Sequence record: MT799840.1 | Strand: one strand, 5' to 3' | Length of the DNA stretch: 64,000 nucleotides | Shown here: positions 352 through 21,093 of the stretch, in pieces | How positions within the stretch are numbered: the stretch's first letter is position 1 | How the letters are laid out: every line of letters starts with the position of its first letter | Notes under the pieces: model-generated | Databases searched by the model: none | The model's input: only the letters and a program-made list of their open reading frames with translations | Told to the model about the DNA's origin: nothing | Translations under genes and position numbers: made by a program

Positions 352-935
352 GCGAATAGCGATTGACCGCGCCAATGGTCCAATCACTTTTAAACCCTGC
401 ACGCTAGGGCTCCAAGTCCTGGGATTGTTACCCAGGACGCTTTTTCGAAAATACCTGCCGTGGTGTCTTCGACAAAGCGCAATCTAACACTGCGTGATTT
501 ATTATGTTCTGGAAAACTTTCGCCGTGGAACAGAACCGGTGAGCGTCGGCGGGGAATCCGACAATCACCACCCATTCAGGTACTCGGTAGATAACCGACC
601 TGCCGACGGTGCTACGTCGGGCGTAGTTCGGTTTGCGAGAGTGTCGAGAAAGTCGACTGCGCACCCATGACAAAATCCGAGTTGACCGTGGCAGCGCCAG
701 AGGACTGGGCAGCGGAGAGACGTCGTTGAACTTACCTCCGATAGTTATCGCTGATTCCGCTCTGGCGTCGGGCCAAAACTGATTCGAATTCGGCGTTGCG
801 TCGAAAAGGGGTCTGCGTGTAGAACCGCAGACTTGGGGGATAACTCCAAAGTGGGGTGATCGGATCTTGACGGCTCGGAACAGACGAGAGGGGTGGGTAC
901 TCCCGTTGTGAAACGCCAGTACCTGGCTGATTAAA
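352..935 (+). ncRNA. Candidate large structured non-coding RNA (block A)
   Basis: No convincing ORF. At least 8 stems read by eye (416-423/431-438, 506-511/531-536, 538-542/565-569, 577-581/598-602, 695-702/760-767, 811-817/826-832, long-range 468-483/795-805). Preceded by TATG at 349-352. Confidence 0.45.
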
Positions 936-984
936 ATTTACAGATTCTGCGTGAGGTATGATAAACCAAACGGAGAATTAAATC

Positions 985-1560
985 ATGAACTTGTATCGCA
1001 TCGGGTTTTACCGGAACGAGGTACCAGAATCGGTTTTGGTTGTCTTAGCCGAAAACGAGGAGCATGCCAAATCCTTCTGGCCGGTTAGCGCAGAGCGTCC
1101 AGCGGTTGCGTGCTGCTACGACGGTCCAGTTGCCGCAACGGATGTCGCTGCAGGCGTAGTCCTGAAGATGGGCCGATGGGAAGATTACTCCCATCCCGGT
1201 TTGGAGTTTGTTTCCGAACCTGCCAGACATTCCTGGGAATTTCCCTCAGGCAACACCGAGACGTATTTCGGATTTCAGGTTAAACAACCTTCGACGCTCA
1301 AACTGTACCTGGTGTACAGCGACGCCGCTACCGAAGACTACGTCGATTCCGGAATCATCGTCGGGGCAACAACCCCTGCTGCGGCATTCGCACATTGGGA
1401 CGGTGATAAACCCGGAATCGTTTCGGTCTGTGAGCTACCACTTGAAGCCGGTTTGGTTACGAACATCAAGTGTGAGCAAGGCCAGGAGCTGACTTGGATC
1501 CGCCAGGATTACCTGACGGAAACGACATTCGAGTACACACCGAGGAAGGTGACCCAATGA
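985..1560 (+). CDS. Hypothetical protein with two tandem copies of a small phage domain
   Basis: 191-aa ORF with GGAG RBS. Halves begin MNLYRIGF..VLVVLAENEEHA and LKLYLVYS..SGIIVGATTPAAA. Confidence 0.75.
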   Translation: MNLYRIGFYRNEVPESVLVVLAENEEHAKSFWPVSAERPAVACCYDGPVAATDVAAGVVLKMGRWEDYSHPGLEFVSEPARHSWEFPSGNTETYFGFQVKQPSTLKLYLVYSDAATEDYVDSGIIVGATTPAAAFAHWDGDKPGIVSVCELPLEAGLVTNIKCEQGQELTWIRQDYLTETTFEYTPRKVTQ

Positions 1561-2048
1561 CGACGATAGCGTTCGACGGAAAAGTCTTAGCTGCTGACGG
1601 CCAGTTAACCCGTGGGTCGAATATCTGCAACCTGAATACCCAGAAGTTATTCGTCTGTCCTCCTGACGAGGAATGGTGGATTACTGGTGAACGGATTGTG
1701 GCGTTCGGAGTAAGTGGTGATATCACAGGACAGTTGGCCCTGCTGGAAACTGTCCGCTTGAGACCCGGCTACAAGGGGTTAACGCAAAGCTCGCAGTTAC
1801 CTGCGAAGATGGATTTTACTTTCCTGATGCTTCTGGCCTCAGGGAAAGCGATAGTCGGTGGGAAGCGTGAAGACGACGTGTCGTTGTGGTGGAGTGAAGC
1901 CACACCACCTCTGGCAACCGGAAGCGGTTACGAGTACGCGTTGGGTGCGATGAAGATGGGCGCGAATGCGGTTCGTGCTGTTGAGATTGCGTCCGAATGC
2001 GATATCTACACCGGTGGTGAGATTAGCACTTACGAACTACGGAGGTGA
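1557..2048 (+). CDS. HslV/proteasome-beta-like Ntn hydrolase
   Basis: True start is ATG 1557 (ATGA overlap, GAGGAAGG RBS), giving MTTIAFDGKVLAAD. Also TGSGYEYALGAM and DIYTGG motifs typical of the N-terminal Thr protease fold. Confidence 0.75.
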   Translation: MTTIAFDGKVLAADGQLTRGSNICNLNTQKLFVCPPDEEWWITGERIVAFGVSGDITGQLALLETVRLRPGYKGLTQSSQLPAKMDFTFLMLLASGKAIVGGKREDDVSLWWSEATPPLATGSGYEYALGAMKMGANAVRAVEIASECDIYTGGEISTYELRR

Positions 2049-2051
2049 ATC

Positions 2052-2102
2052 ATGCGGGAGTCAGAAGCACGCAAGCTTGACCCCATCAATCGCCTGCGAT
2101 AA
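2052..2102 (+). CDS. Possible 16-aa micropeptide MRESEARKLDPINRLR
   Basis: Strong SD GGAGGTG at 2041-2047, ATG 2052, TAA 2100-2102. Alternatively the segment is a structured RNA leader. Confidence 0.3.
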   Translation: MRESEARKLDPINRLR

Positions 2103-2141
2103 CGGGGTAGCGCATCCGTATAAACACGTTTAAAGAATTCT

Positions 2142-2217
2142 GGGGGTATGGCGCAATTGGTAGCGCACCGGTCTCCAAAACCGAAGGTTCGAGGTTCGAA
2201 ACCTCGTGCCCCCGCCA
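2142..2217 (+). tRNA. trnW: tRNA-Trp (CCA)
   Basis: Full cloverleaf: acceptor GGGGGTA/TGCCCCC, anticodon loop CTCCAAA, GGTTCGAAACC T-arm, encoded 3' CCA. Confidence 0.95.
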
Positions 2218-2281
2218 CATTTAGCCAACGAATTCAGGTTCAACACAGAAGACACAGATTTGTCAACTGTTGGAGAACAAC

Positions 2282-2524
2282 ATGAATTTGTACTTGCTAG
2301 AACGAACTGACGATATCGGGTATGATGAATTTGATTCCATAATCGTGGCGGCTCCTACGGAGCAAGCCGCGTGTGCAATTCCTCCCGACCGTGGTCATTG
2401 GATGGACTGCCGCTGGTTACCGAAAGAGCGCTGGGATGAAGGGCTTACCCTGACCGTTACTCTTATCGGTACTACGCACTATCCTGCTGGGACCGTCGTT
2501 CATGAATCGTTCAATGCTGGCTAA
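2282..2524 (+). CDS. Small hypothetical protein, same domain family as 985-1560
   Basis: GGAG RBS at 2272-2275. Sequence MNLYLLERTDDIGYDEFDSIIVAAPTEQAA. Confidence 0.75.
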   Translation: MNLYLLERTDDIGYDEFDSIIVAAPTEQAACAIPPDRGHWMDCRWLPKERWDEGLTLTVTLIGTTHYPAGTVVHESFNAG

Positions 2525-2526
2525 AC

Positions 2527-2544
2527 AGTGGGCTTCGGCCCACT
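2527..2544 (+). terminator. UUCG stem-loop after CDS (no U-tract)
   Basis: AGTGGGC-TTCG-GCCCACT. Confidence 0.45.
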
Positions 2545-2731
2545 AACCCTATTCGAGCCGTGATACTTACTCAGATTGTGCGGGTTGATGTCCCGCATGA
2601 GCCGGTAGTAGCTTAGACCTACGGTAGACCAATAAATCCGTAGCAGCCAGGTACACAAAGCACCAGGTCGCTTGTACAGGATGCTGGGTATCTGACCGGT
2701 CATAACCTCATTCGATACGAGACACGTTTAT

Positions 2732-3299
2732 GCATGAAATACTCCAGTACATCAGGATGTTGATTTCCAACATCCGGTTCTGGGTATTCAGTCATGTTTG
2801 GTTTACAGGCGATGGGTTTTCCCGCAAGGGCCCCACTTACAGACTGGCGTCTCCACGACAACCGTCCCTAGGGGACAGGCAAGCACCGGCCCATTAAGCC
2901 GCTACGCTACGCCTGTAAATCCACAATTTGATAACCGAATGGGATTGAGTTCCCAGTGTTAGGGTGACTGTGTGTCACCGTAGGCGCGGTACCTCATACG
3001 GCCGGTACGCCACGAATGTACGTGATAGCGGGTGGTGCTTGGAGGCGCTAAGACCTGACCTTGCGGCCAGGCTCAGAAGAAGAAGTCCATCACCTGCATT
3101 CAGGAATGAATTTAGGTTAATTATTGGAAGTGGCGAAATCACTTACGTGATAACTTAGTAGTATGCAACGAACAATACCAGAGTGACTTTACGAGGTTAC
3201 TGTGGTATATGTCGGTGCGCCGGGCAACGTGTTGCCGCAGATAGGCCCGAGGGAGCTGAGTGCATTAACACACGCCGGGATGCACCGGCACCTTACAAT
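2732..3299 (+). ncRNA. Candidate structured non-coding RNA(s) (block B)
   Basis: Stems 2755-2762/2768-2775, 2802-2811/2910-2919, 2864-2868/2872-2876, 2940-2944/2951-2955, 2963-2968/2974-2979, 3028-3037/3088-3097. GNRA loops (GCAA, GGAA). TATG at 2729-2732. Confidence 0.45.
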
Positions 3300-3300
3300 G

Positions 3301-3367
3301 GCTTTGTAGCTCAGGTAGGTAGAGCAGCCTCTTTGAGGAAGGTCGCCGGTTCGAGACCGGTCAAAGC
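3301..3367 (+). pseudogene. tRNA-like element with collapsed anticodon arm
   Basis: Canonical D-arm (GCTC..GAGC), T-arm (GCCGG TTCGAGA CCGGT) and a 6-bp acceptor. The anticodon arm is 13 nt with a 3-nt TTT loop, and no CCA is encoded. Confidence 0.7.
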
Positions 3368-3369
3368 AA

Positions 3370-3444
3370 GAGCAGCGAAGTTAGAGGAATTAACACCCGA
3401 CTCATAATCGGATATTTCGACGGTTCGAATCCGTCCGTTTGCTC
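3370..3444 (+). tRNA. Degenerate tRNA with CAT anticodon (Met or Ile2)
   Basis: Anticodon arm CCGA-CTCATAA-TCGG and T-arm GACGG-TTCGAAT-CCGTC. Acceptor stem has a bulge, position 8 is A, and no CCA follows directly. Confidence 0.6.
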
Positions 3445-3451
3445 GTCCCAT

Positions 3452-3785
3452 TTGTGTTATCCTTATCCCGAAGGCATTCGAAATAAGACGCGTATCCACA
3501 CACGGGTCAAGGGTAACACGAACCACTTCCGCGGTCACCGTGTCCATTGCCGCCTACCTGCATGGGCTGTCCTCCGACACGGTGACTTCGGGCCAACTTA
3601 CAGGCCAGGGCCGTTTGGGTTTTTCTTACGCATCCATCCAGAGCCACCTCGCGCCCTAGTCTGTATACCCCTTTTCTGTTCCTGGTTTGCCAACTAAATC
3701 AATTAAGCCTGGTGCGTTGCCCTGGGAACAGAAAAACTTATTCGGTTACACGCCGAACCCACCCACGAGGGATATGTCGTGGACT
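3452..3785 (+). ncRNA. Candidate structured non-coding RNA (block C)
   Basis: Stems 3454-3462/3511-3519, perfect 11-bp 3534-3544/3576-3586, perfect 11-bp 3672-3682/3725-3735, and 3763-3768/3777-3782. Confidence 0.4.
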
Positions 3786-10376: not shown

Positions 10377-10804
10377 AACTGTACATGACCATAGGCGAAG
10401 TCTTCAAATATGAGTCGTTGTTGGCACGGGCCGAGATTGCTGATACTAGCGAGATCGAGCCCGCTGTCGCTTATTTGTTTCTGGCCAGTTACGCTGAATT
10501 AACGGTACGTTCTATTGTTAATGGGCTAGGTAAGGGTGAGAACTTTCTTACTTTTATTCCCCCAGACCCTGCGTTGATACTGGAACAGTTGCGCGGGATG
10601 TGGGGTACTGAAAAGGTACTGCCTCTAAACTGCTACAACATGAGCAGTGGGATTAAGGATGATGTTCGGTTCTATGAAATCCTTTCCGTGATAGAACGTG
10701 TGTGGGGCATGGCTGGCTTGACTCCAGAAGACGGAGCAAAAAAGACAAAGGTTTCACTCCTTATGAATGAAATTGGCAACGCACTCATCTGTGTTGAATG
10801 TTAA
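10373..10804 (+). CDS. Hypothetical protein
   Basis: 143-aa ORF, ATGA overlap. Confidence 0.75.
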   Translation: MKLYMTIGEVFKYESLLARAEIADTSEIEPAVAYLFLASYAELTVRSIVNGLGKGENFLTFIPPDPALILEQLRGMWGTEKVLPLNCYNMSSGIKDDVRFYEILSVIERVWGMAGLTPEDGAKKTKVSLLMNEIGNALICVEC

Positions 10805-16141: not shown

Positions 16142-17995
16142 ATGGTAAAAATCGTTGACTCTAACAACAACGCTCAGCAGAACAACACTCAGACTCAAGA
16201 CACCGCACCACTGGGCGGTCTGGGCAACGAGACTGTAAAAGTGCAAACTGCTGTGCCGGGTACTTCTACTGTCAGCCAATTCGATAACGCATTTGGCATC
16301 CGCAACATCAGCACTTATGCAATGCACTTCACCAACCTCCTGGATGAGCTGAAGAAAAGCAACGAATACCTCAACGCATTCCGCTGGGGCACCATCGTCG
16401 GCGTGGGTAACGAAATGGGTTCCGCGGCGTACGTCGCAGGCCAATGGCAGGGCCACTGGCTGTACGGTATCATCTTCTTTGAACGCGGTCAGTCTCTGCG
16501 TCTGAAAGAAACTACCAACAACGGCCAGGAAGACTACTACACCATCACTGAACTGTTCAACAAAGACGTGCTGGCAGTAGTACAGAAAAACATCATGGAA
16601 GCGCATGGTCTGACCAATGCGAACTTCATGATCATCAACTCCGTACCAGACCTGGGTAAAGTTCTGGATGCTGAGTGGGCACGTACCCTGATGGGTCAGA
16701 TGATGATGGGTATCTTCGGTCGTATCGCAGGCTACCTGGGTACACTGAACCTGCGTAAGCATGACCGTTATCAGGCCTCAGTAATGCCGCTGGAAGATGG
16801 CGCGGTTGTGGATGCTAACGGCCACGCACAGCGTGCTGATTTCGCAATCACCGTTGAGCACAGCCCAAGCAACGTAACCGACGCCACTCCGACTCTGCTG
16901 GACACCAATCAGGTACAGGTGTATCCGCGTGTATCCGGTACTGGTTTCGTCAATATGCGTTTCACCGGTCAGAAGCCTGTCGTTAACGGCGTCTACGACC
17001 TGAAACAGCTGCAGGCTGAAATCGTAGTAAGTCTGATCGATTCTCAAACTGAAGGTGCAATGGCACCGTATGAACGTCAACTGCTGCTGCTGGCTGCATT
17101 TGCAGAAATCGCGGCAATCGGTGGCTGGCGTGACCTGTTTGTGAAACGTCTGAACAAACAAGATCGCAAGTTCTCCCGTGTGGCAGAATACCTGTCCTGG
17201 GGCGCTGACGCTCGTCCTGACGTATCCAAAATCGACGGTAGCCGTGAAGCTATCGAAGGTTGCCTGGATATGTTCGCACCGCGTGAAGCAGCACTGGTAG
17301 TTAGCCATCGTGCCGGTAACGGCCTGGGTGGTCTGTCTACTTTGCTGTCTGAAATTGCGGTCGGTTACGACAACTCTCTGAAACAGCTGCTCGCTATTCT
17401 GAATTCCATGTCCCCGCGTGATCAGAACGGCGAAGTTGTTGCAGCGACCAGCTTCACTGCAGTATTTGCTTCTGCACTGAAAGCACAGCTGGGCGATGCC
17501 TTCAATGGTACCATCCATTGCAGCCACATCGTGAAAGCAGCCGTACCGACTGTTTCCGGTGTTTACACCGGTACTGCACAGAAACGTAGCTTCCAGGATA
17601 TGGACCTGATTTCCGTTGTTACCAAACTGGGTGATAACGCGAACGACGTCTATAGCTACCTGAACGCACAGTCCTACAGCCACCGTGAACTGAACGAGCG
17701 TCAACAGCGTATCTACATGCTGAAACTGGCCGCTTCTCTGTTCGCATCCAAAGCACCGCAAGCTACCGGTGAATCTCTGGATATGGCTATCAACCCGATC
17801 TTCGGTAAATGCCTGCTGGACTTCGTCCGTAACAACTGCACCTGGTCTATGACTGGTGTAAATGCCTACAACACGATGGCGACCTCTCTGTTCTTCAACA
17901 ACGGTGGGGAAGACTTCACGCTGTCTGGCAACGGCCTGTCTGCAAGCGGTTCCGATTTCGGTCTGGGCGTGACTCTGAGCAACTTCAAACTGTAA
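16142..17995 (+). CDS. chmA: Chimallin / phage nuclear shell protein
   Basis: 617 aa with very strong high-expression codon bias, tandem early promoters, its own terminator and a low-complexity N-terminus. Sits immediately upstream of the nvRNAP beta-prime N gene, the conserved chmA locus. Assigned by size and synteny. Confidence 0.8.
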   Translation: MVKIVDSNNNAQQNNTQTQDTAPLGGLGNETVKVQTAVPGTSTVSQFDNAFGIRNISTYAMHFTNLLDELKKSNEYLNAFRWGTIVGVGNEMGSAAYVAGQWQGHWLYGIIFFERGQSLRLKETTNNGQEDYYTITELFNKDVLAVVQKNIMEAHGLTNANFMIINSVPDLGKVLDAEWARTLMGQMMMGIFGRIAGYLGTLNLRKHDRYQASVMPLEDGAVVDANGHAQRADFAITVEHSPSNVTDATPTLLDTNQVQVYPRVSGTGFVNMRFTGQKPVVNGVYDLKQLQAEIVVSLIDSQTEGAMAPYERQLLLLAAFAEIAAIGGWRDLFVKRLNKQDRKFSRVAEYLSWGADARPDVSKIDGSREAIEGCLDMFAPREAALVVSHRAGNGLGGLSTLLSEIAVGYDNSLKQLLAILNSMSPRDQNGEVVAATSFTAVFASALKAQLGDAFNGTIHCSHIVKAAVPTVSGVYTGTAQKRSFQDMDLISVVTKLGDNANDVYSYLNAQSYSHRELNERQQRIYMLKLAASLFASKAPQATGESLDMAINPIFGKCLLDFVRNNCTWSMTGVNAYNTMATSLFFNNGGEDFTLSGNGLSASGSDFGLGVTLSNFKL

Positions 17996-18077: not shown

Positions 18078-20029
18078 GTGAGAAAGGTACCAAAATTCTA
18101 CGGAATATCCGGCCGGTTGGTTAGTCAGGATAACTATTTGTCCGATTTGCAAATAGAAGCTGCTGCCAAAGGTATTAAACCACCCACTATTATTAACGAT
18201 GTCGCCGTTAACGGGGATGCGATCGAGGTTGCTGAACTTATCGATCGCATGGTACAGAACAGAATCGTTGACGAAGAACTGAACTCTGCACCGATTTGTA
18301 GTTTGGATTGTCCGGCACCGATCGCGCATCGTTACAATCTCGGTTGTAAGTGTCCGACGTGTGGCTATGTTGTAACTGAACATCGAATTGAATCCGATGT
18401 CTGGTTACGTGCACCCGATGAAATGGGTAACTTCGTCAACCCACGATTCTGGGCAATGTTCAATGCTTTCTTTAATAGCAAGTTGAAGAAGTTTGAACGT
18501 AACAAGGTCACTATCGAACGCGGTAATGACTTGATGATGTGGATGATTGACCCGTATTACCGTATAGAAGAACCAGACGGTAAACGCGCACATGCTGTGA
18601 AACGTGTATTGGAAGAACATGGTTTCGTTCGTGGCTTGCGCAATCTGGTTGATAACCACGTTAGTATCTTTAACATCCTTACCACGCCAGAAGCCTGGAA
18701 GGAAATCTTCGCACCTAATCGGCATAACGCCGCTGAAGGTGAACGCTTACGTTTACAATGGAAGGAGCTATTCGAAACGCAACGTCACGCATTCTTCCCA
18801 AGACACTTACCGCTAATCTCCTCTAAACTTATCGTTACTGAGGAAGGTCGTCGTGGTGTCATGGTAGACCCAGTGTTCACGGGTGCTATTGACGCGGTGA
18901 AAAATATCGCGTTGCTCTATACGCGGCGTAAAGCGATCGAACCACGTTTTCTGATTAGTCGTGCTTTGAAAGCGAACCGTCAGTTAACGTACTTCCACAT
19001 GGACTTCCGTCGTGAGTCTATGGAAGGTAAACCGGGTGACTATCGCGCGAAATTGGGTTCCACCCATATTCCGTTCGGTGGTCGTGCAACCATCTCACCT
19101 ATCTCAGAACCACACGATGCCTGGAAGTTAAAAGCACCATGGCGTTGGATGGTTGGGTTGATGTCGACCCACATCGAGAACAAACTGCTACGACGGGGTT
19201 ATTCGTCACGGCAGTGTGAACGTATCGTTGCAAAAGCGGCAATGCAGTATGACCCGCTTGTAGATGAAATCTTTAAAGAGCTAATTCGTGAATCCCCAGG
19301 CGGTCTTGGGATCATGGTCATACCGCTACGTAACCCAACGCTGGTACAGTTGTCTATTCAGACGCTGTTCATCGACGAAGTTGTTACCGATGTTAACCAG
19401 TGTTCGCTGCGTATCTCTGACCGTGTGATCAAGATGGCTAACGGTTCGAAAAGAGCCCCATCGGACGGGAAACCTCTGATGCGTATTCTCCTGAAATGCT
19501 GGGAAACCCTAAAGCGTGTCTACCAGAAATGGGGACGAAAGTCTGAAACAACAGATACGATGGCCTACGCTAAACAATACTGCTAACGGTTGTGATAATG
19601 GGTAATCAGCAGCGAAGCCTCGTGAGAGGAACGTTCAACGACTATCGCTGAAATGCGAGTAGGGGTCCCAGTGGACTTCGAAGTGGGAGAACACCTAAGG
19701 CGATAGCTATGGTGAAGATATAGTCTGTGCCTTATCGAGAGATAAGGAGGGTGTCTTAGCACACCTGCTGTATACGGAAACGGTATACGGTGGACAAACA
19801 GGATTTCGATGGCGACCAGTTCCAGGTACGTTTGCCAGTCGATGAAACTGAGATGAAGTTGGCGCTCCAATTCCGTCCAGATAACGGCTTTATGTCTTCT
19901 ACTGATGTGGACCGCGTAGAACACGGCATGGTTTTACATAACGAGCTAATCAGTATGCAGAACCAGTTCCTTATTGAAGCAGATGAGGATGATGAAGAAG
20001 GCATTCCGTTGGAAGCGGTGATGGGCTAA
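18078..20029 (+). CDS. Non-virion RNAP beta-prime N-terminal subunit (phiKZ gp55-like), two exons 18078-19445 + 19802-20029, ~531 aa
   Basis: Zn-ribbon CSLDC..CKCPTC, MEGKPGDYRAKLG, GGRATISP and LRNPTL motifs. Splicing restores the catalytic NGDFDGD. Confidence 0.9.
19446..19801 (+). mobile_element. Group I self-splicing intron, ORF-less (356 nt)
   Basis: P AAATGCTGGGAAA 19494, Q AATCAGCAG 19604, R GTTCAACGACTA 19633, S AAGATATAGTC 19715. P1 hairpin has the U.G pair at the 5' splice site (U19445.G19455). Terminal G19801. Confidence 0.93.
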
Positions 20030-20042
20030 TAGGAGTATTGTA

Positions 20043-20624
20043 ATGTGGCTACAAGGTAGCACGGTGTGGACGAAACAGACCGAAGGTAGCGGGGCACTCA
20101 GCGTATTCAAAGAATCGTTTTCGCTGTCTAGCCTGGCACCCGATCTCGTTGACCGTGTAAAAGAACATTGTCAGGACTTAATCTCACTGGAGCGTTTCCG
20201 TGAAACATTCAGTACCGCACGTAAATTACGTTATAGCGATGCGGTAGAGATGGTAAGACAGATCGAAGAGTTGGGTGAATTCCAGTTCGCCAATGCTGCT
20301 TTACAGCCATTCCTCGTTGCCATGCCGGAATATCGTAAGTTGTATAATGACGGTATGGCGACTGGTTATGAGAATGGCTTTTCGCGGTTGGATGTGTTCA
20401 AAGGGAATGCGTATATGCGTACTGATGACCACTTCCGCGAAGCAACATCGGGCATTTCGACGAAGTACGACGAAGATAAGATTTGGCAATGGGCTACCAA
20501 TGAAGATCGTGCAGTACGACTGAGTCGAATCGATAAAGTGGATATTCAACTTAACTGGGCACGCATGTCAGCTTTCGACTGGGAAGATGGTGATCCCTGT
20601 TCGGAACTTGGCGCGACGTGTTAA
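20043..20624 (+). CDS. Conserved phiKZ gp59-like core protein
   Basis: 193-aa ORF, AGGAG RBS, core synteny after nvRNAP beta-prime N. Confidence 0.7.
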   Translation: MWLQGSTVWTKQTEGSGALSVFKESFSLSSLAPDLVDRVKEHCQDLISLERFRETFSTARKLRYSDAVEMVRQIEELGEFQFANAALQPFLVAMPEYRKLYNDGMATGYENGFSRLDVFKGNAYMRTDDHFREATSGISTKYDEDKIWQWATNEDRAVRLSRIDKVDIQLNWARMSAFDWEDGDPCSELGATC

Positions 20625-20631
20625 AAAAGAT

Positions 20632-20654
20632 GGGGCTTCGGCCCCTCTTTTTTT
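20632..20654 (+). terminator. Rho-independent terminator
   Basis: GGGGC-TTCG-GCCCC + T-tract. Confidence 0.8.
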
Positions 20655-20706
20655 CTTCACTGGGGGCTGTATGCAGCATCCTACCTTGAATTTGACAGGA
20701 GCTAAC

Positions 20707-21093
20707 ATGATTGCGGTAGGAACCTTATCCACACGTGGCTGGGCACGTACACCCCAGGAAAAGGCGCGTGAGTTGATGAACCATTACACCGAGTCTGGCT
20801 ATAGCCAATCGGTGGTTTATCGTGGGAACATTAAATCACTTGCGTATACGCAAGCTGTGTTTGCACAAGATCCCGATGGGATGGTTGCCCAGATTAAAAT
20901 GGATTTGGAGAACCTCTACGGGAACGTATTTCCTGCTGGCGTTGAAGTTGAAACCAGCTGGGAGTTTTTAAAAGATTCAGATGTGCGTTACCGCATCTTC
21001 ATTAGTGTCCGTGTGCAAGAAGTTGTAGACGGTGAATGGTACGATGTTGAGCGGTACGTGGATACCGAGTCGAGTGCGATTGAGGATATGTAA
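20707..21093 (+). CDS. Conserved hypothetical protein (possibly T4 gp25-like fold)
   Basis: Start reassigned to MIAVGTL (AGGA RBS; TATG motif at 20670). The fold is a guess from the C-terminal helix + two strands. Confidence 0.65.
   Translation: MIAVGTLSTRGWARTPQEKARELMNHYTESGYSQSVVYRGNIKSLAYTQAVFAQDPDGMVAQIKMDLENLYGNVFPAGVEVETSWEFLKDSDVRYRIFISVRVQEVVDGEWYDVERYVDTESSAIEDM

Follow-up and report, generated by a model that had tools for sequence, protein, structure and literature searches.

Group I introns are already known in the RNA polymerase catalytic sites of chimalliviruses, and the intron described here, in Salmonella phage JN03 (MT799840.1), is an ordinary new example. JN03 is an SPN3US-like jumbo phage of the genus Seoulvirus, and its first 64 kb are the stretch of DNA that was analyzed (the window). 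In phiKZ, the gene for the beta'-N subunit of the non-virion RNA polymerase (nvRNAP) lies directly downstream of the shell gene, and its catalytic motif is interrupted by an intron that matches Rfam family RF00028 at 75.6 bits. JN03 has the same arrangement, and the two introns have core sequences in common. The phiKZ intron differs in being 1372 nucleotides (nt) long and in encoding the HNH/NUMOD endonuclease gp56 between gp55 and gp56.1, in agreement with an earlier sequence-only reading of the JN03 locus. Its junction (CCT AAT^GGA CAA ... AAT ACG^GCT GAT TTT, where carets mark splice sites) divides the motif as N^ADFDGD, one codon upstream of the NG^DFDGD junction in JN03.

A second chimallivirus precedent is the PhiPA3 gp210 intron (Birkholz et al. 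2024, Science; PMC11620839), which is likewise a group I intron beside the catalytic aspartates of a multisubunit RNA polymerase. Unlike the JN03 intron, it interrupts the beta subunit of the virion polymerase (vRNAP) and encodes an HNH endonuclease, which was shown to be a weapon against co-infecting phiKZ (PMC11620839). Outside this family, the T4 td, nrdB and sunY introns and the SPO1-type IA2 introns resemble the JN03 intron in being of IA type and in occupying conserved parts of essential enzyme genes, and they have relatives that carry I-HmuI-type HNH nickases, as JN03's intron does (PMC12908238). Their host genes are different. Transcription and translation are coupled in T4 and physically separated in nucleus-forming phages (PMC12908238), so the context in which the pre-mRNA folds differs from that in T4.

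Positions 19446-19801 of JN03 are very probably a genuine IA-type group I intron in the phage nvRNAP beta'-N gene. The interrupted gene is laid out as follows.

18078..19445, + strand: exon 1 of nvRNAP beta'-N, 456 codons, ends ...RVIKMANG; collinear with the SPN3US intron-less gene
19446..19801, + strand: group I intron, 356 nt, no endonuclease open reading frame (ORF); from Rfam RF00028 and the SPN3US empty allele
19801, + strand: omega-G, where the intron ends; G is likewise the final base of every related intron examined
19802..20029, + strand: exon 2, 75 codons plus stop, DFDGDQFQVR...; contains the catalytic Asp triad

The exact boundaries and the restored reading frame can be observed directly. 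The exon-1 frame is ATG GCT AAC GGT (M A N G) at 19434-19445 and continues as TCG AAA AGA GCC (S K R A) into the intron; the long ORF that contains it (18078-19586) extends 46 codons beyond 19445 to a stop at 19584-19586. On the 3' side, positions 19796-19819 read AAA CAG^GAT TTC GAT GGC GAC CAG, which encodes D F D G D Q from 19802. The frame of exon 2 differs from that of exon 1 because 356 is not a multiple of three. The sequence-only reading had described these frames correctly, including the read-through of the ORF track into the intron and the start of exon 2 at 19802.

The SPN3US homologue is a single uninterrupted coding sequence (CDS; positions 1501-3096 of the retrieved locus) that is exactly 356 nt shorter than the JN03 gene and differs from the window at 32 of 1596 aligned bases. 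Removing 19446-19801 from JN03 gives the same protein sequence as this natural allele, which reads CSLRISDRVIKMANGDFDGDQFQVRLPVDE across the junction and contains the shorter stretches KMANGDFDGDQFQVR and RVIKMANGDFDGDQFQVR. The alignment to SPN3US alone permits a gap at either 19445-19800 or 19446-19801. We place the boundaries at 19446-19801 because only this choice has a 5' exon ending in U (U19445) and an intron ending in G (G19801) and fits the P1 helix. PHROG 2987 profile positions are also contiguous across the junction, with exon 1 covering 1-417 (E = 5e-155) and exon 2 covering 418-477. The predicted junction peptide, MANGDFDGDQFQVR, is a clean tryptic peptide. Both this peptide and the NG^DFDGD junction had been proposed before the comparison was made, and the natural intron-less SPN3US allele encodes them exactly.

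The intron shows the fold signature of a ribozyme. RF00028 matches positions 19426-19747 on the + strand over its full model (1-253) with a score of 68.6 bits against a gathering score of 50 (E = 2.6e-15). This is the sole intron match in the window, where the other Rfam matches are three tRNAs. Together with the 356-nt difference from SPN3US, it bears out the earlier assignment of a group I intron to exactly these positions. The whole intron also folds 3.9 standard deviations better than shuffled sequences (minimum free energy (MFE) z-score -3.9). The P (19494-19506), Q (19604-19613), R (19633-19644) and S (19715-19726) elements are all present, and they agree in position with the earlier reading, as do the P1 U-G pair and the omega-G.

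A secondary-structure model from P1 to P10 was built by hand from the Rfam alignment. All of its 94 pairs are canonical, and separate MFE folds of sub-domains recover P1, P2, P4-P6, P7.1, P7.2, P8, P9, P9.1 and P9.2. Covariation was assessed over ten introns, which come from JN03, SPLA3, Proteus phage 7, SaP7, two IMG/VR contigs, phiKp_32, VB_ZK_P1, EL and Vibrio phage 2 TSL-2019. Nearly half of the modelled pairs (46 of 94) have at least one compensatory double change relative to JN03, amounting to 148 cells across the set. The helices of the model are listed here with the changes seen in these relatives.

19443-47 / 19453-57, + strand: P1, GGU^UC with GAGCC, five canonical pairs, U19445-G19455 wobble at the 5' splice site, loop GAAAA
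19459-19481, + strand: P2, 9 bp with a bulged C and a GAAA loop; recovered by MFE folding, with compensatory changes in five of nine pairs
19486-92 / 19685-91, + strand: P3, seven canonical pairs, four with compensatory changes
19497-19502 / 19606-19611, + strand: P4, invariant; the P4-P5-P6 domain is 19497..19634
19507-09 / 19600-02, + strand: P5, with an extension of about 90 nt that has two GAAA-capped hairpins
19612-19634, + strand: P6/P6a, GUGA loop; P6 is invariant and P6a covaries
19640-44 (R element) / 19721-25 (S element), + strand: P7, five canonical pairs, pseudoknotted with P3; GACUA/UAGUC becomes GACCG/UGGUC in Proteus phage 7 and SaP7
19645-19658, + strand: P7.1, recovered by MFE folding, compensatory changes in three of four pairs
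19662-19679, + strand: P7.2, recovered by MFE folding, compensatory changes in six of seven pairs; GGGGUCC/GGACUUC becomes GGUGCU/AGCACC or GGAUCC/GGAUCC
19692-19714, + strand: P8, CACC/GGUG becomes AGCC/GGCU, GACC/GGUU or CUCC/GGAG
19715-19726, + strand: J8/7 and the P7 3' strand (S element, AAGAUAUAGUCU), aligned to the part of RF00028 with the highest conservation
19730-19747, + strand: P9, GAGA loop, compensatory changes in six of seven pairs; CCUUAUC/GAUAAGG becomes CCCUAAU/GUUAGGG or CCCAUGU/ACAUGGG
19750-19765, + strand: P9.1, recovered by MFE folding
19768-19790, + strand: P9.2, GAAA loop, compensatory changes in four of nine pairs
19446-51 (UCGAAA) / 19804-09 in exon 2 (UUUCGA), + strand: putative P10, six canonical pairs

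Over the ten introns, P3, P7, P8, P5a2, P5c and P6a covary, and P4 and P6 do not vary. Covariation in the four ORF-less variants extends to the pairing at the 5' splice site, from GGU^UC / GAGCC in JN03 to GCU^AA / UUGGC in VB_ZK_P1 and one IMG/VR contig and GCU^A / UGGC in the other contig. Most non-standard pair cells come either from the outer P5a and P5d helices or from the two sequences most distant from the rest. Because P7.1 and P7.2 lie between P7 and the P3 3' strand, the intron is assigned to subgroup IA; the narrower label IA2 is our assumption. With P7.1, P7.2, P9.1, P9.2 and the P5 extension of about 90 nt within its 356 nt, the intron is not minimal, as it had first been described. 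A hairpin previously called a GAAA-capped P9 is indeed present at 19768-19790, but it corresponds to P9.2 in our model, and P9 proper has the GAGA loop. The proposed P10 may be longer in JN03 than its equivalents in relatives, which are 3-5 bp (AAAA/UUUU, AAAU/AUUU).

Two other arrangements of P1 were rejected. The P1 drawn by Rfam (19430-19438 / 19456-19464, splicing after U19435) includes non-canonical pairs and contradicts the intron-less allele. An extension of P1 by pairing GAUGG (19433-37) with CCAUC (19458-62) would use bases that form the strongly covarying P2.

Several observations weigh against a functional group I intron at this site. Splicing in JN03 is predicted from DNA sequence. 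P1 is short and has only three exon pairs, three unpaired bases separate P10 from P1, and the P1 of the automatic Rfam alignment is displaced upstream by ten bases. Covariation gives no backing to the outer P5a and P5d helices, which we regard as unsupported. Finally, a long-read transcriptome study of phiKZ reported that, in the conditions it tested, the predicted introns yielded no spliced reads (PMC10914365), so in vivo splicing in this phage family is less well documented than is usually assumed. The available papers offer little direct RNA evidence that the homologous phiKZ introns are spliced.

If the 356 nt were instead a spacer, the gene would be truly split, and exon 1 with its 46-codon tail would assemble with a second polypeptide that starts at GTG 19790. 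This GTG is in frame with exon 2, the gene is entered in some records as two CDSs ("beta subunit 1" and "beta subunit 2"), and jumbo-phage RNA polymerase subunits are already split into several polypeptides (PMC7598289). However, a spacer is not expected to score as a group I ribozyme with extensive covariation, and the break would separate NG from DFDGD within the Mg-binding loop. The GTG is part of the P9.2 hairpin and is not preceded by a Shine-Dalgarno-like sequence, the exon-2 start differs between annotators, and in relatives with 98-99% identity the protein is encoded without interruption. We consider a split gene most unlikely and favor the intron.

Sequence and profile similarity identify the interrupted gene as nvRNAP beta'-N, the homologue of phiKZ gp55/56.1. 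The exon pieces were searched separately, and the natural intron-less SPN3US protein served as a full-length query. A Pfam search of the two exon pieces gives no match, but the PHROGs and Protein Data Bank (PDB) searches do match. Both JN03 exons hit PHROG 2987 ("RNA polymerase beta subunit"), and the best solved-structure match of the SPN3US protein is 7OGP chain A, "PHIKZ055 / PHIKZ056.1" (E = 5e-39). 7OGP is the phiKZ nvRNAP structure, and its chain A is the beta'-N-like subunit. The PDB search aligns SPN3US MANGDFDGDQ to phiKZ gp55 APNADFDGDQ with DFDGD over DFDGD, and it includes weaker matches of the same query to residues 329-480 of E. coli beta' (E about 8e-5). The universally conserved DxDGD motif, through which the catalytic Mg is coordinated, is 417-DFDGD-421 in phiKZ gp55 (PMC8287921). 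The corresponding DFDGD of JN03 is encoded by the first five codons of exon 2 (19802-19816). The alignments to phiKZ gp55 and E. coli beta', with the Mg role reported in PMC8287921, thus agree with the earlier statement that the insertion splits the catalytic motif.

These features suggest a conventional splicing pathway. The nvRNAP beta'-N pre-mRNA would be made early in infection. Its last exon bases, GGU, would pair with GCC at 19455-19457 and set the U19445-G19455 wobble at the cleavage site, where an exogenous guanosine could attack after U19445. The freed exon 1 would then attack after G19801, probably guided by P10 (19446-19451 / 19804-09), and the ligated mRNA (AAC GGU GAU UUC) would encode ...MANG-DFDGDQ.... 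If the RNA is left unspliced, translation should run 46 codons into the intron and stop, giving a product without the Mg-binding DFDGD. The Asp triad is not part of exon 1, so that an active nvRNAP logically depends on splicing. In phiKZ, Gp55 runs as two bands (figure legend, PMC10612078), and one might speculate that these are the products of unspliced and spliced mRNA.

Whether the intron is present or absent varies directly and visibly among close relatives. A megablast search with 18078-20029 matches JN03 at identical coordinates with 100% identity and finds 37 further related records. The same 356-nt intron is present in six independent isolates with 98-100% identity (JN03, EC001, 1252, Lh1B, SPLA3 and SPLA5c). 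An HNH intron of about 1.4 kb is found in two or three records (SaP7, Proteus phage 7 and apparently SPFM1), and the site is empty in at least 15 of the records listed, among them SPN3US, SEGD1, most of the SPFM series, SPLA1a and MET_P1_082_240. A single site thus has three states (intron-less, ORF-less intron and HNH intron) among Seoulviruses that are 98-99% identical. As a separate matter, the megablast matches to the polymerase gene in several SPFM records (LR535901, LR535903, LR535904, LR535907, LR535908, LR535912 and LR535913) are split into 26-27 pieces, which suggests many small indels or low-quality sequence there.

This distribution bears on whether the insert might be a decayed, inactive intron relic or an assembly artefact, so that the nvRNAP gene is broken. 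The JN03 intron has no endonuclease, its locus is poorly annotated, and the insert is known only as sequence, all of which would fit. Yet six phages from different sources, independently isolated and sequenced, have the same insert, and all of its core helices are intact. Moreover, tblastn finds a single beta'-N locus and no spare copy in the JN03-type phages listed, and these phages are propagated as viable isolates. A broken gene is hardly credible on this evidence, and an intact intron accounts for it better.

The exon sequence next to the insertion site differs with intron status. In all seven intron-plus alleles examined, which include both intron types, the codons at 19437-19445 are GCT AAC GGT, and in all five intron-less alleles examined they are GCA AAT GGA. 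The three differences, at -7, -4 and -1, are synonymous. Position -1 is T in every intron-plus Seoulvirus allele examined and A in every intron-less one; the U-G wobble needs this T. The linkage of -7 and -4 fits either co-conversion of the flanking exon or selection on the endonuclease target.

A further proposal is that the intron is kept as a regulator of the onset of late transcription, with splicing efficiency as the timer. The sequence-only reading raised such a timing switch as a possibility, acting on all middle and late transcription. The logical requirement for splicing is compatible with it, and in T4 both growth state and translation are known to influence the splicing of group I introns (Sandegren and Sjoberg 2007, as cited in PMC10914365). 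However, SPN3US, SEGD1, the SPFM series, SPLA1a and MET_P1_082_240, whose flanking exons are 98-99% identical, do without the intron, and a different intron occupies the site in SaP7 and Proteus phage 7. An element that is dispensable among near-identical siblings argues against a required timer, and we consider this role very unlikely. The at least 15 listed intron-less relatives and the two or three with an HNH intron indicate that the JN03 intron behaves as a dispensable, mobile or relic element. The reference to all middle and late transcription is also too strong, because phiKZ nvRNAP has been shown to act on late genes and the enzyme for the middle class is unknown (PMC10612078). The structural part of the earlier interpretation is supported, and its functional speculation is not. 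It is more economical to view the intron as a selfish or relic element at a site where imprecise loss would be lethal; the general logic by which introns persist at such sites is reviewed in PMC12908238.

It is also directly observed that the JN03 intron has no endonuclease ORF. The intron is overlapped by the exon-1 read-through, by short frames and, in antisense, by two ORFs of 113 and 82 codons. Translations of the read-through and the 113-codon antisense ORF have no Pfam match, and a tblastn search with the relatives' HNH protein finds no JN03 match at E <= 1e-8, in agreement with what had been noted before. This HNH protein has high identity only to Proteus phage 7 and SaP7, and its next matches are the intron ORFs of EL and phiKZ-like phages.

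The introns of the Seoulviruses Proteus phage 7 and SaP7 have the same insertion point as the JN03 intron, the same nine upstream exon nucleotides (GCT AAC GGT) and the same P2-P9.2 architecture. They differ in being 1404 nt long, with an ORF of 286-332 codons placed between the 5' splice site and the guide sequence, in the P1 loop. This ORF has NUMOD1, I-HmuI-like and HNH_3 domains. The ribozyme cores are about 78% identical to that of JN03 despite exons that are about 98% identical, which indicates that the two Seoulvirus introns are separate lineages and that the HNH intron is not the immediate parent of the JN03 intron. The JN03 intron may be an orphan whose P1-loop HNH gene was lost or never received. 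It would persist by vertical descent or spread through recombination, for which a co-infecting relative's endonuclease might act in trans.

Comparison with other chimalliviruses shows at least four distinct insertion points within the stretch that encodes NADFDGD. The phiKZ intron is at N^A. The NA^D site is occupied in JN03, Proteus phage 7, SaP7, EL, phiKp_32, VB_ZK_P1 and two IMG/VR contigs, and the introns of Proteus phage 7, SaP7, EL, phiKp_32 and VB_ZK_P1 are Rfam-positive there. Those of EL and phiKp_32 each have an HNH ORF. Vibrio phage 2 TSL-2019 is interrupted at NAD^F and VP4B at NADFDG^D.

JN03 is not unique in having a beta'-N intron without an ORF, since several others are now evident. 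Intron 1 of VB_ZK_P1 (365 nt) and the introns of the two IMG/VR contigs (350 nt) are of this kind, and ORF-less introns are found in beta'-N at the other motif positions in Vibrio phage 2 TSL-2019 (392 nt) and VP4B (386 nt). PhiPA3 has an ORF-less intron of 450 nt in gp65-66 (PMC10643120), which also belongs to a chimallivirus nvRNAP but in another gene than that of JN03. All of these differ from the JN03 intron in their hosts and lineages.

The two IMG/VR contigs are jumbo-phage sequences of 221-225 kb that were matched by a degenerate sequence-pattern scan; an exact 34-nt JN03-specific pattern has no matches in IMG/VR. Their inserts, at 676-1025 (- strand) of the locus retrieved from UViG_3300045988_078609 and at 10388-10737 of that retrieved from UViG_3300045988_113438, are at the exact site used in JN03 and have a conserved 3' end and helices in common with the JN03 intron. 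The beta'-N proteins of these contigs are 67-69% identical to that of JN03, and their introns have many compensatory changes.

phiKp_32 (Klebsiella) and VB_ZK_P1 (Raoultella) have an additional feature at this locus (3348-3670 of the retrieved locus in each). Their JN03-type intron is followed by a 12-nt micro-exon, GATTTTGACGGT (DFDG), and a second insert of 311 nt that begins after U and ends in G, after which the homologous protein resumes with DTMYCYVLSDLKGKAKAYG. This insert has a folding z-score of -3.3. In VB_ZK_P1 it matches no Rfam family at E <= 1, and blastn against all of the other introns gives nothing significant. An ATG just before the end of the insert could instead start a separate polypeptide.

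The variety of elements at this motif raises the question of whether its 21 nt are a contested landing pad for several independent intron lineages, where ORF-less introns persist because they protect the gene (an "immunity intron"). In such a scheme, the occupied site and the three linked silent exon changes would keep the HNH endonucleases of co-infecting relatives, for example SaP7 or Proteus phage 7, from attacking the essential polymerase gene. We regard this scenario as rather unlikely, though not negligible. The narrower proposal that occupancy by the JN03 intron may protect against relatives' HNH enzymes, by analogy with the contest between PhiPA3 gp210 and phiKZ (PMC11620839), is put forward as a hypothesis. 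Seoulviruses offer empty, ORF-less and HNH states in near-identical genomes that can be grown on laboratory Salmonella or E. coli hosts. They could extend the work on the PhiPA3/phiKZ "weaponised intron" by asking whether an ORF-less intron is protective, trans-mobilised or neutral.

The intron is real and missing from database annotation, and the locus is mis-annotated. The JN03 GenBank CDS (18249-19586) begins too far downstream and stops within the intron, and that record has no CDS for exon 2. In the EC001, Lh1B, 1252, SPLA3 and SPLA5c records, the gene is given as two proteins with differing exon-2 starts. Core-gene counts or polymerase models that are built on these records would contain a truncated, inactive subunit.

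The gene upstream of the polymerase is identified by orthology.

16142..17995, + strand: chimallin (ChmA, the phage-nucleus shell protein), ortholog of SPN3US YP_009153316.1

The JN03 polymerase gene is directly 3' of this gene, and YP_009153316.1 is likewise just upstream of it in SPN3US. We call the ORF chimallin because it is orthologous to this protein, which is named SPN3US ChmA in PMC10643120, and not from direct similarity. A comparison of the ORF with PDB sequences gives no match, and its BLAST matches to phiKZ gp54 (E = 0.57) and the VP4B shell protein (E = 0.11) are not significant. The order of shell gene and then polymerase gene is also annotated in phiKZ, EL, Vibrio phage 2 TSL-2019 and VP4B.

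Downstream of the polymerase gene, the ORF at 20043-20624 (193 aa; PHROG 3254, unknown function) overlaps the next ORF (20587-21093) by 38 nt. The SPN3US counterpart of the latter begins later, at record position 19976. The three tRNA genes that Rfam finds in the window are on the + strand at 2142-2214 (65.6 bits), 3300-3369 (37.1 bits) and 3372-3443 (30.6 bits), and the last two are adjacent.

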